DNA from: Saccostrea echinata
Taxonomy: Eukaryota
Length of the DNA: 64,000 bases
Reading direction: 5' to 3'
Assembly: GCF_033153115.1 (NCBI RefSeq)
Contig: NW_026889803.1
Location: 55,986,001 to 56,050,000 of the forward strand
Of this stretch, positions 27,001 to 60,100 are shown in pieces. The stretch's first letter is position 1. Each line of letters begins with the position of its first letter. The position numbers were made by a program, and so were the translations under genes. Below the pieces are notes generated by a model. It was not told the DNA's origin, made no database searches, and was given only the letters and a program-made list of their open reading frames with translations.

Positions 27001-30000
27001 CCTCAAACCCAGAAAATAAGCCACGCCCACCGTCCAGCCACGTATCAACCCCTTCAGCCACATGCGAGTGTGTCCCTGCTCCAGTAATGCAGGCAGTACC
27101 ACTTGTAACAGAAGAAGCTCTAGGGAGAGTTCACTAACAGGGGCATCACTGAAACAAAACAGATACTCTGTAAACTTGTTACAGGTTATCAACAATAATT
27201 GTCCACACAGGTACTTAAAAATTCAGTCTAAAAGTAAATAATGACCATCCAAATCAAATAATGTCTCAGTGTGTACCTTGACAACATAACATGGTAAGGT
27301 AGAAATGATGTCAAGACTTTTCTAATGACACGGGCTGGCAACCATAACATTAATAAAACTGTGCTTCCAAAAATCACCTGAAAACAGAGAAAATAATGTG
27401 CAACTAGAAAAATTGCTGGAATAAAAGGCTTGAGGTGAGACACAATATCCACTGCTCACTAGAGTACTTACAACAGAAGCCAAAAATCTCCTGGCATGTC
27501 TGTACACTGGTAGGTGTATCATCTACAAGCAGATAATCAAAATTATCAAATACTTTTCTCAGAATTTCATTACTCTTTCATAAGAGTAAACCATTCAATA
27601 CATTTGAGCAAAGAAATGCTGAGTTGAAAATGTACTTTTTGGCTGATCATAAGTTCATACAAAGATTTAAGTTATGATATCTCTGAACAAAAAAAGTTAT
27701 CATAATCAATTTTTGGCACATGTCCATGCCCTTACTCTGTCCATGACAGATGATAAGACCATAAACTTTGCAACTGAAAGTCCAGCTTCACTACCAATGA
27801 GGAATGTGTGTACATGCTATTTAGTTCTTACAAATGTATTATTTACTCAGAGTTTTAAGGATAATGTTGATTTCCTACCTCCTGTATGGGATTGAATTCT
27901 GGGTCATTCAGATTTCTGAGGAACCAGAGGACCCCTGGTCTGAGGACCTCTCTAAGGAGGAGAATGAAGGAGGCAAAGTAGAAGACATATACCATCCCCA
28001 CCAACCAGTGGATAAACATGGAGGTCCCTGGTGCTGCATGGAAGCTGTTTTTCCTGTCCTTCAAGGTAGCATCAAACATTGACTGCAAAATACAAAGAAA
28101 CATTAACATGGCAGTTCTGCTCCTATTCTTAACAAATATTTGAGATGGTGATAATTTTCTATATGTATTAAGCTGCAGTAATACACATGTACCTTAAATT
28201 TTGCATTTACTTTTGAATCTTACCAAGGAACAAATATCAAGCCACCAGCCACAAATGACAGGAAACACACCCACTTCTATAACAACTAGCAGCATCACCT
28301 TGACAACAACATAACAAAGGCCCAGCACTCTGCGGAACCTGTGTAATAAGAATTATGACTAGAGTTTAATACATTTATTGACCAGTTTTAGTCATGATAT
28401 ATTCATTGCAACAAATAATTACATTTTTTTTTCATCCAGCAGCATTTTCGTGTGCTTGCAATAGTTTTTGATTGGCATTTTTCTCTTTCAATCATAAGTA
28501 CCTAAGTTATACATGTAAACAGTAAATTTGGCATTGGTTCCATAATATTATGAATTTCTTTTGATGCCATAAAGACAGTAGTGTGAAAATTCTGAAGAAA
28601 CAATTTGAACTACGTTTTGAAAATGTTAATTATTAATGTGATTTTAAGTTTGTAATTTTTACAGCTTACTTTCTAAGTTTGGCTATGGAACATAACATGT
28701 AGAGAATGATAAGAGCTTACTTTCTAAGTCTGGCTATGGAACACATCATGTAGAGAATGATAAGAGCTTAGTTTCTAAGTCTGGCTATGGAACACATCAT
28801 GTAGACAATGATAAAAACTTACTTTCTAAGTTTGGCTATGGAACACATCATGATAAGAGCTTACTTTCTAAGTTTGGCTATGGAACACATCATGTAGAGA
28901 ATGATAAAAACTTACTTTCTAAGTTTGGCTATGGAACACATCATGATAAGAGCTTACTTTCTAAGTTTGGCTATGGAACACATCATGTAGAGAATGATAA
29001 GAGCTTACTTTCTAAGTTTGGCTATGGAACACATCATGTAGAGAATGATGAGAGCTTACTTTCTAAGTTTGACTATGGAACACATCATGTAGAGAATGAT
29101 AAGAGCTTACTTTCTAAGTTTGGCTATGGAAAACATCATGATAAGAGCTTACTTTCTAAGTTTGGCTATGGAACACATCATGTAGAGAATGATGAGAGCT
29201 TACTTTCTAAGTCTGGCTATGGAACACATCATGTAGAGAATGATAAGAGCTTACTTTCTAAGTTTGGCTATGGAACACGTCATGATAAGAGCTTACTTTC
29301 TAAGTTTGGCTATGGAACACATCATGTAGAGAATGATAAGAGAAGCTGAGATTACAATGTATCCTATCATGGTAGTCAGGAGGCCTTCAAAGTGGGTGGA
29401 TTCCACCTGTAACAGAGAACTCAGGTGAGGCAAAGCAGTCCATTAGTATGTACCTACAAGCGTATATTGTAAGAGGAGAAAAAATCCATTCTGATGGAGT
29501 GCATACCATGTCATCCATCTTCATTCCAACCATGGTGAAATGTCCAATATGGTAGGGACAAAAAGCTAAAAATAAATGTATATGTACATTGAAAAAAAAA
29601 CAAAAAACAAAACAAATACAGCTGACACAGACATGAACAATCAATGTTGTCAATGTTTTCAAAAAATAAACAAAATGAAAAAAAAAAAAATCTACTAAGG
29701 TAGTTTTTATAAATAAGATAAAAATCATGTACATCTTGTAAGTGAATAAAATTGTTTTAGTATAATGACTGGCTGCTGATTTAATATCTACTCACCAAAT
29801 ACCAGTATAAATAAGGTATTCAAAGACACCACCCAGAAAACATGTTCCTGCAAACAGACACCATACAGCAATCAACAAACAAAATCTCAGAATATGTTAA
29901 AAAGTGAAATATACATTGTACCGGTAGTTTATAATAATTATGTACCAGAAAAACAAGTGAGCCATCCAATCCCAGAAGTCTCTCCCATGTCAGTTCTTCA

Positions 30001-57110: not shown

Positions 57111-60100
57111 CTAAGATTTTTGCATTGATTCTTTATTTGAATCGCCAATAAAGCAACCATCTTGACTCATTTCCATGGTAACACTGCTCTGATTGGCTGC
57201 AGACTGTTGGGCTTTAGGGGAATGCCCTCCTTCTTTGTCACCAGATCCTTGGCGGCCATGGTGACGTTTAAGGTGAATTTTTAGAGTGCTGTTTTGTGCT
57301 GTTGCATATTCACAAAATGTGCATTTGAAAGGCTTCTCTCCTAAAGGAAATTAATAATATACTTGAAAAAAATGTATATACTTAAGGAATGTTTTTAAGT
57401 TTTGTGTGAGTTATTGGTGTGTAAATCACACAGACTTGTCACACAGGCATATTTCATGAAGCAAACTAGCGCTTCATGAAAAATATGCCAACGTTCAAGT
57501 CTGTGTGATTTACACACCAATAATTCACACTACACTTAAAAACATTCCTCATATTTACACTTTACATGTTTAAATGTGCCAAAAATATACTCAATGTTTG
57601 AATTTCTTGCTGCCCTATATCGTCATATTTATATAACGTCTCTGTAGCCTCATTGTGACGTCACTTTAGCGCAAGGTTCTCCATGTATATTTCTATGCGG
57701 GAGTATACACAAAAATGGTTTTCAAATCAATTTCACAGTTAGCTTAGTAGAAAAACACAGCAAATGTAAATATAAACGTACATGCAAGAAAAAGGTTGAG
57801 AAAAATTGGATCCACTTTTATCAATCATACCAAGAAAAGTTCTGAATTAAATCTCCAAACAACTCCTCAAGTATGAGTATGACAACCTTTTATCACTGAA
57901 AGCTGTCATTACCTGTGTGACAACCTTTTATCACTGAAAGCTGTCATTACCTGTGTGACAACCTTTTATCACTGAAATCTGTTGTTACCTTTGTGACAAC
58001 ATTTTATCACTGAAAGCTGTTGTTACCTGTGTGAATCCTGATGTGAACTTTCAGGTGACTCCTCTCTACTGTTGAATAATCACACTGCTGACACTTAAAA
58101 GGCTTGATCCCTAAAATCAGTGAGAAAATTGCAAGTCCAGCAACAACATAGAGCCAAAGAAAGCAGTGCTTAATGCCACCAGAACAATCAGTAACAAAGA
58201 AAACAGTTCTTACCTGTGTGTTTACTCATGTGTTTCTTCAGGTGGATTCTCTGATTGAAGGCATTGTCACATTGATCACACTTGTATGGCTTGGTGGTAG
58301 GGTATCTTCTCTTCCGTCCCAGTTTTCCATCTCCATCCTCATTGTACTGTGTGTCTTTTTCACTCATCTCACAGCAATCTGAGGAGCTGGGAACTAGATT
58401 AAATTGTCTTGTGGCCTGGGAGATAATGGATGGAAGATCAATACCAAAAACTTGCGATTCTGATGTCACATAAGTAGAGGTATTGCCTAAGTTAGAAGGG
58501 AGATAATCACTCTGAGCTGAAGATATGGAAGAGTTCTGGTCCTTTTGTGTCAACCTATCACTGGAATGTTCAAGTTCTTCAGAGGAGACTGATTTGGTTT
58601 CATATCTAGCTGTCTTGTTTGTATCCATACTCTGTGCAGGAATAGTGTAAGATATAGGAATGGAGAAGACTTGTCTTGGCTTAATGAAGAAACTGCCTCG
58701 ATTAGGTTTCTGGGAATTTGCCTTGGATGTTGAGTCCCTTGTCATGCCTGTTACATGTATCCCTAAACTTTCTCCAGAACTGTTGTCAAAGTTTGAAGTC
58801 CTTGTTTCTGAAGAGGATTCATTTTCAGAGTGGGTTGCAGTGACAACTCCACTTTCTGGCTTCAAATCAATGTAGATTGTGCCTTGTTTTCTACTGGCAG
58901 GCCTCCTAAAAGAGGCATCCCTACTGCTCATCATCCGCCTCCTGTTAAATCTTGTCCGCCAGTATGAGGGCATGTGTTTAGTCTCCATGTGTCTTTTACG
59001 CTTCTTAGGAGCCACAGCATAGCAGCACTTTTTGAGACTCTCATGGGTCCCAGGAATGACTGTGACCCCACATTTCTGACTGGAACAACAAGCATCTTCT
59101 CTCTGTACAACCTCTTCTGACATGTTTTCTCTGTCCTCAGAGCCTGCCTCTTCCACTATACTATCACTACAGCTCTCAGGGTATGAGGATTCAGGATTTC
59201 TTATGTTAGTTTCATTAAAATTGTTTGAATTAAACTGAACTGGATTTACCATAACACTTGGTGGGGGATTTTCAATGCTGAATTGTGCTGGGTTTTCTCT
59301 TGTTATTGTCTGAGATTCAATTTGTGAACTGTTTGGAGATATGTTAAGTATAGGAACTGCAGGATTATCAATAGTTGAACAGAGACCACTAAGACAGCAT
59401 TCTGACATTTCTTGTGTGGTTACTTGTCCAGGGAGGAGGGGCTTCTCTTCAACAGAGTTTATCTCTATACTATCCGGTGATACTCCACTGGACCTTGTAA
59501 CTAGATTTACTGGGACATCATCGTTCAAATCCAAAAAGTCATCATCCCTTGACCGGGATGAAAGGATTCCATTCCTGTATGATCCATTCTCCAGGAAAAG
59601 CTGCAGATTGTGGGAGATTCTCGCATGCTTCAGAAGTCCTACAGCTGTCATAAATCCTTTAGAACAAGTGGAACACAGCAAACCTAGTGTAAAAGATATC
59701 TGTTCTGATGAGACAGTAGCTCTTGTTAGACTAATGGTTTACACTCAAACTAATCTAGGAAAATGCTATTCTTTAAAAGTGAAACTCTTTCTCCTTCATA
59801 TCATTCAAAAAGGGGTCAAAAGGCTACAACAATTTTCAAATATACTGAAATGTTTTAGAGTATTATTTCTATTTTTTTTAACATAATTGCTTCATGGTTT
59901 ATTGAAAGGAATCTAAACATTTATATGGTCTTACTCTCAGTTGTCTATGTAATTATATTAATGTTAAATATAATACATTAAAATACCACTGGCTTAAATA
60001 TTTAAAATTGTGTGGTGTAAAATGTATTTTCACCTGGTTCTGTTTCATCACAGGAGATGACATCACAGTCTTTCTTCTTGTGCTCAATAAATGTTACTAT

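Follow-up and report, generated by a model that had tools for sequence, protein, structure and literature searches.

Minisatellites repeating exon ends and 5' splice sites in three neighbouring genes of the oyster Saccostrea echinata

Background

Minisatellites that straddle an exon-intron boundary have been described in amphioxus and in human genes. Three arrays of this kind lie in a 64,000-nucleotide stretch of the genome of the oyster Saccostrea echinata (contig NW_026889803.1, forward-strand positions 55,986,001 to 56,050,000; below, the window, with positions counted from its first letter), in the neighbouring genes MARCHF6, a WD40-repeat gene and a hunchback-like C2H2 zinc-finger gene. 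In amphioxus, a minisatellite at an exon-intron boundary is called a "mirage"; it is reported to leave splicing undisturbed, and mirages have been proposed as a route to intron gain (PMC3087553). The Adh3 mirage, originally described by Canestro et al. 2002 and known here as it is cited in PMC3087553 and PMC3902484, shows length polymorphism and somatic instability according to those two papers. Other mirage genes are TnC, presenilin, RDH, the globins BflGb6/9 and PGBD5 (PMC3087553, PMC3902484), PGBD5 and TnC having been added by the latter. In human, the first monomer of a minisatellite lies across an exon-intron boundary in F7, IFI6, CBS, LMNB2 and PDGFA (PMC1557585). The unit in F7 IVS7 has 37 bp, made up of 4 bp of exon and 33 bp of intron; IFI6 is the gene also known as 6-16, and the CBS array lies in IVS13. 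Mutagenesis of F7 showed that the pseudo-donors downstream of the authentic site are functional but silent, the most upstream site being chosen (PMC1557585).

The initial annotation of the window knew of no named description for such a class, which the amphioxus mirages and the human genes do provide. Mirages and oyster arrays have in common that their units span the exon-intron boundary and repeat the splice signal, and their unit sizes overlap (10-160 bp). Amphioxus mirages are known gene by gene and occur at both 5' and 3' boundaries, with no genome-wide count or donor bias given in PMC3087553 or PMC3902484, whereas the oyster arrays have a mollusc as host and belong to a genome in which arrays of donor motifs exceed their control 3-7x, and those of acceptor motifs at most 1.7x. 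Human and oyster arrays alike consist of an authentic donor followed by identical pseudo-donors, and the layout of the oyster zinc-finger array (38 bp, with 7-8 nt of exon and 31 nt of intron) is nearly a copy of that in F7. In contrast, the human cases are isolated, and the units of the oyster MARCHF6 and WD40 genes consist almost entirely of exon (44 and 38 nt) and include just 5-7 nt of intron. A search of the accessible literature found no paper on such arrays in oysters, or on such arrays with a genome-wide donor bias. The oyster arrays are thus a known structure, found here in a mollusc and at genome scale, with a real donor bias that tolerance alone does not account for. The favoured reading, to which a probability of about 0.8 is given, is that they are mirage-type minisatellites in which a piece of the junction was duplicated in tandem and the duplicate then grew stepwise.

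The tandem-duplication model of intron gain (Rogers), for which cases are given in PMC4974935 and PMC2891723 and a mirage-based version in PMC3087553, shares with these arrays the duplication of a segment carrying a splice signal and the removal of the extra material by the spliceosome. The model creates a new intron, however, and the oyster arrays only lengthen three introns that existed before. Intron gain by this route was rejected for the three genes; for MARCHF6, another mollusc has its exon end at the same residue, and the junction is colinear with a 994-aa ortholog. The initial annotation had seen in the arrays the raw material of intron gain; with exon ends conserved in other species, what they record is intron growth. 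Microhomology-mediated tandem duplication is described in PMC13167724 as largely neutral and depleted from coding regions.

Structure of the three arrays

Tandem repeats in the window were listed with Tandem Repeats Finder (TRF). Apart from transposon-type and A-rich low-complexity repeats, there are four short-unit arrays with at least three copies and a period above 19, and all four had been named in the initial annotation. Three of them are junction arrays, in which 7-44 nt from the end of a real exon, together with its GT donor, recur head-to-tail into the intron. The junction reading and a genome search bear out the earlier description of three unrelated units, each straddling a real exon/GT junction. 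The units have no sequence in common with each other, and a search of the 923-Mb genome with each array finds its own locus as the sole match. A transposon-internal or dispersed satellite origin of the units was rejected on this ground; the single-locus matches, together with the local derivation from exons, indicate that the arrays are not mobile elements.

The MARCHF6 array (28663-29342, minus strand; TRF period 51 with 42-bp variants, 85% matches) has 14 units by TRF and by unit-by-unit listing. It begins within an exon of 110 nt (29297..29406, minus strand) that is bounded by the acceptor ttacag/GTGGAA and the donor AGAAA/GTAAGCT, the authentic donor GT being at 29296-29295. Unit 0 comprises the last 44 nt of this exon (29340-29297) and 7 nt of the intron; the 13 units that follow (decoys, at 29289-28664) take up 626 nt, or 65%, of the 958-nt intron 29296-28339. 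AAA/GTAAG is retained in 13 of the 14 units, and the sequence of unit 7 is exactly that of the exon unit. Four units, at positions 1, 4, 8 and 10, are 42-bp variants with a common 9-bp deletion, so interspersed that the array has a higher-order 51/42-bp pattern, seen by TRF as periods of 93 and 144. Such a pattern is typical of stepwise unequal exchange and not of a single rolling-circle burst, and it lends no support to the suggestion of rolling-circle copying.

The gene is identified by a RINGv (RING-variant) domain at 38568-38705(-) (Pfam) and by about 21 exons laid out on the minus strand from 38669 to 24030 by tblastn with two full-length MARCH6-like proteins (positions 27958-28001 were masked in the tblastn and in the junction alignments described below). 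A PDB sequence search with two of the exons as queries gave no useful match. The translated array exon matches residues 386-422 in P0145, a 994-aa MARCH6-like protein, and residues 4-48 of the next exon's open reading frame (ORF) align to residues 421-465. This next exon begins at ORF residue 6, which is residue 423 of P0145, so that splicing at the first donor would give a protein with neither gap nor insertion. In the protein of another mollusc (P0109) the corresponding exon ends alike (...LARLKK, against ...IAKLRK in MARCHF6).

A two-copy version had been claimed at another MARCHF6 donor. It was not recovered: with a TRF score of at least 30, no duplicate containing GTRAG is present at the other junctions. 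When 21 donor and 21 acceptor junctions were compared with 1.2 kb of adjoining intron by local alignment, a score clearly above the null was obtained only at the array junction (27, against a null maximum of 15); one acceptor-side query, that of 28190, reached 18 (null maximum 16), with a match that is marginal and far from the junction. The 17-bp duplicate at 30105-30138 was considered as a donor copy and rejected, as there is no donor at that place and it sits in an ORF (30056-30259, minus strand) that resembles a dispersed repeat. A similar ORF is found at 38092-38304(-). Both lie within MARCHF6 introns and share ...YPQ(Y/C)LKPSDI...RFDC..., and they look like copies of a dispersed element.

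In the WD40-repeat gene, the 71-nt exon at 45560..45630 (plus strand; ...HEGTVSCCQFSRDG) ends in ...GATG/GTAAGT, with the donor GT at 45631-45632. The array at 45593-46186 (plus strand; TRF period 42, 80% matches) has 14 units of 42 bp by TRF, segmentation and unit alignment. Unit 0 consists of the last 38 nt of the exon and 5 nt of intron (GTAAG), and the 13 decoys (45636-46186, 551 nt) make up 70% of the 789-nt intron 45631-46419. This is the older array: the mean pairwise identity of its units is 0.805 in the unit alignment, and a plausible GT donor is still present in about 9 of the 14, 4-5 decoys having no GT. Among the 13 decoys, the donor columns are conserved to 0.875 and the rest of the unit to 0.873, so the decoy donors decay neither faster nor slower than the remainder of the unit, and the comparison shows them to be, in all likelihood, evolving neutrally. 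The next exon, 46420-46502, reads LMLVSGSYDNTLVVWD, and the exon end FSRDG joined to it gives a canonical WD40 repeat, as judged by the logic of the repeat; WD40 Pfam matches occur on neighbouring exons at 41523-41741(+) and 41995-42207(+). Position 45605 is C in the unit's exon copy (GTC, Val) and T in all 13 decoys (GTT, Val). This one synonymous difference sets the boundary unit apart from the homogenised array, as in amphioxus mirages, where the units are homogenised to the exclusion of the boundary unit.

The zinc-finger array (57880-58034, minus strand; TRF period 38, 4.1 copies, 94% matches) has four units of 38 bp by TRF and unit listing, each made of 7-8 nt of exon and about 31 nt of intron. 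The C2H2 zinc-finger exon from which it starts has 84 nt (58027..58110, minus strand) and ends in ...CACACAG/GTAAC, with the donor GT at 58026-58025. All four donors in the array conform to CA(C/A)AG/GTAA, and the three decoy units (about 117 nt) account for 17% of the 686-nt intron 58026-57341. Matches to the Pfam family zf-C2H2 are found at 58010-58225(-) and 57114-57350(-). The 516-aa ORF of this gene is 99% identical to the S. echinata protein of LOC133172291 at NCBI, and a Mytilus relative bears the name hunchback-like.

Use of the first donor and effect of the decoys

Both the NCBI protein of LOC133172291 and its S. cucullata ortholog read ...VHIRIHTG/EKPFKC, the sequence expected when the first donor is spliced to the exon that starts at 57340. 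In two of the genes the evidence thus agrees with use of the first donor, by ortholog colinearity in MARCHF6 and by the NCBI gene model in the zinc-finger gene. As far as comparison of sequences goes, the conserved exon ends and colinear proteins, and in the WD40 gene the completed WD40 repeat, also show that the exon parts of the units are ancestral coding sequence from which the arrays were derived locally, and not the reverse.

Reading through the first donor leads to a stop in each gene: TAA directly past the donor in MARCHF6, TAG 7 codons on in the WD40 gene and TGA 6 codons on in the zinc-finger gene. The expectation that decoy use would add a premature stop is thus borne out in all three. 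The further proposal, that decoys are used in proportion to copy number and that expression is lowered through nonsense-mediated decay, draws its appeal from this stop, which every use of a decoy would bring in. It is nevertheless improbable, since the downstream pseudo-sites of F7, functional as they are, stay silent in minigenes as long as the upstream site is intact (PMC1557585), and since the NCBI model of the zinc-finger gene takes the first donor.

Placement at 5' splice sites

Three examples, picked post hoc, could in principle reflect ordinary intronic minisatellites that happen to lie at a junction, a misassembly, or a repeat derived from a transposon. With 40-60 donors in the 64 kb and a target of about 40-45 bp at each, at least three of 4-6 arrays would start no further than a unit's length upstream of a donor with a probability of 6e-5 to 1.4e-3 (a post hoc estimate for the window). 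The units moreover carry individual substitutions and form a higher-order pattern, each matches its own locus only, and donor motifs are in excess genome-wide, all of which makes an explanation by chance, misassembly or transposons barely credible. The placement had been described as apparently non-random from the window alone, and that judgement is upheld by this probability and by the genome-wide comparison with controls.

For this comparison, which is free of annotation, a 7-mer occurring three times at 20-50-bp spacing was counted in the genome and set against the same pattern reversed. Donor motifs are in excess: GGTAAGT has 1811 such triples against 244 for its reverse (7.4x), AGGTAAGT 576 against 86 (6.7x), GGTATGT 1386 against 495 (2.8x) and GGTGAGT 873 against 687 (1.3x). 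For the acceptor motif TTTCAGG the figures are 323 and 346 (0.9x). The broader TTNCAGG gave 2890 against 1455 (2.0x); since many of its matches are CAG/GTAAG donor arrays, the pattern was redone as TTNCAGGV, which allows no T after CAGG, with 1747 against 1055 (1.7x). Counted as loci on contig C1, there are 17 for GGTAAGT, 13 for GGTATGT and 8 for GGTGAGT, against 5 for the control TGAATGG, one of which is itself a GTGAGT array. Scaled to the genome, this would come to about 300-550 GGTAAGT loci and about 80 control loci. Among the donor-motif arrays listed there are many unrelated units. Single sites are about equally frequent in 264 kb of local sequence (27 for GGTAAGT, 32 for TGAATGG), so the abundance of the motif is not the cause of the excess of triples. 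The proportion of GGTAAGT matches with A at position -2, that is, AGGTAAGT, is 32%, against 35% in the control, and 9/17 when counted by loci on C1. The association with donors is real and is tied to several donor-like sequences, and acceptor-type arrays are mildly enriched at most.

Several points weigh against this picture. The genome-wide counts are of matches and not of loci, so that long arrays weigh heavily; arrays were scored by the motif alone; and the excess of GGTGAGT is just 1.3x. Among about six minisatellites in 200 kb taken at random from this chromosome (20 pieces of 10 kb), not one is clearly a junction array; one encodes a repeat in frame, and two others are ambiguous. Tolerance of donor-side duplications alone, furthermore, cannot lift donor arrays above the neutral baseline, which they exceed about 3-7x as measured by the reversed motif.

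Some individual arrays outside the window deserve mention. A 24-bp repeat on the minus strand of L025:1-89 (G000:C54:54200001-54200089) reads in frame as PAPCDASN, 3-4 times, at the end of a long ORF; it contains GCAAGTAAC, is truncated where the locus ends, and may represent either a minisatellite in coding sequence or an array at a junction. At L024:4318-5062, a 41/29-bp minisatellite stops about 25 bp upstream of an exon acceptor and is not derived from the exon; the array is of the ordinary intronic kind, situated close to a junction. The unit of the array at G000:C1:52404024-52404471, ...CCTGTTTTACAG/GTGAGTAG, has a pyrimidine tract, AG and then directly a donor, arranged as in a recursive splice site; this array was also caught by the TGAATGG control. 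A 46-bp unit bearing AGGTAAGT forms arrays on two contigs, at G000:C1:38809844-38810218 and G000:C8:143319-143648; the two loci are either copies of a duplicated gene or members of a small dispersed family.

Origin and growth of the arrays

The favoured reading, of mirage-type minisatellites grown by steps, runs as follows. In each gene, a piece of 38-51 bp over the exon end and the 5' splice site was probably duplicated in tandem, likely through slippage or microhomology-mediated repair. The sequence just past the array resembles the start of the unit in two of the three cases (TGAGGAC against TGAGGGAAC in the WD40 gene, TCATAC against TCACAC in the zinc-finger gene), which is consistent with a birth based on microhomology. 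Microhomology-mediated duplication, in which a few shared bases bound a short tandem duplicate (PMC13167724), is a plausible first step for these two arrays; it predicts no preference for donors, unlike what is seen in the oyster. The duplicate then grew stepwise by slippage or unequal exchange, until the intron opened with 3-13 extra copies of the exon end and donor. The spliceosome presumably takes the first, authentic donor and removes the decoys as intron, as the F7 array gives reason to expect, and the gene would keep working. Donor-side duplications would be harmless because the first donor wins and the decoys are removed with the intron. Duplications inside exons, and most of those on the acceptor side, would change the mRNA, as an upstream duplicate acceptor would be used; donor arrays should for this reason outnumber acceptor arrays. 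An excess over the neutral baseline, however, calls for a further cause, either a higher rate of birth at the 3' ends of exons or selection.

A higher rate of birth, an idea raised in the initial annotation, would follow if splicing or transcription caused more frequent breaks or slippage at the 3' ends of exons, through RNA polymerase II pausing, the complex of U1 with the 5' splice site or R-loops. Arrays of GGTAAGT and GGTATGT, and more weakly those of GGTGAGT, exceed their controls at equal frequency of single sites, and the involvement of several donor words indicates that the excess follows donor function and not one DNA word; its size over neutral sequence is also beyond the reach of tolerance alone. 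It is suggestive that in two of the three arrays the unit takes in just 5-7 nt of intron, which brings its end to the edge of the donor consensus, but three arrays are too few for a fixed breakpoint and the third includes 31 nt of intron. The mild enrichment of acceptor-type arrays (1.7x) and the higher-order structure in MARCHF6, which reflects ordinary minisatellite dynamics after birth, also count against a coupled hot spot, and it is put forward here as a possibility with the odds against it. Positive selection for extra U1 sites is the other candidate: strong donors might aid exon definition or, in AT-rich introns, keep premature polyadenylation in check. The largest excess is indeed that of GGTAAGT, the best match to U1 (7.4x), with less for weaker donors, and the donors of MARCHF6 are nearly all intact. 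This intactness is explained as well by youth or by homogenisation, given the identity of unit 7 and unit 0. In the older WD40 gene array, with several decoys already lacking GT, donor and non-donor columns have decayed equally, which is weak evidence against selection keeping the decoys, and selection is accordingly considered rather unlikely. Taking both causes together, it can be proposed only tentatively that functional 5' splice sites act as genuine hot spots for the birth or retention of minisatellites in this oyster, whether coupled to splicing, U1 and transcription or maintained by selection for U1 sites.

If the donor excess holds when set against annotation, S. echinata would contain hundreds of natural tandem-donor arrays, and mirages would not be peculiar to amphioxus. 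The choice of the spliceosome among many identical 5' splice sites could then be tested at scale, as could the role of exon-intron junction duplication in the growth and gain of introns. Should a hot spot exist, amplification of exon ends would be a major, lineage-biased driver of intron growth and a supply of proto-introns, affecting roughly 1% of introns by a rough extrapolation. In practice, junction arrays can mislead gene predictors and short-read assemblers.

Other repeats and features of the window

The fourth short-unit array, at 55689-55762 (plus strand; TRF period 25, 3 copies), opens exactly on the TAA that closes the last ORF of the WD gene (55533-55688), as had been stated in the initial annotation. 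It has no splice junction inside and so falls outside the class; the bases upstream of it have no similarity to the 25-bp unit, and its start on a stop codon may be a coincidence. Borderline arrays of 2.7 copies are listed by TRF at 44864 and 60436. The remaining arrays with at least three copies and a period above 19 are A-rich low complexity or of a transposon type with units of 145-168 bp. The latter, often beside (GACA/GACG)n, are located at 52142-53322, 53587-54419 (with 54436-54474), 43367-44020, 275-686 and 2559-2911; they also occur on L006, L010, L012, L017, L018, L020, L021 and L025, pieces of the same chromosome, and look like internal satellites of a bivalve mobile-element family. 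An uninterrupted ORF for a Rho-type GTPase is present at 5784-6479(-), among the exons of another gene.

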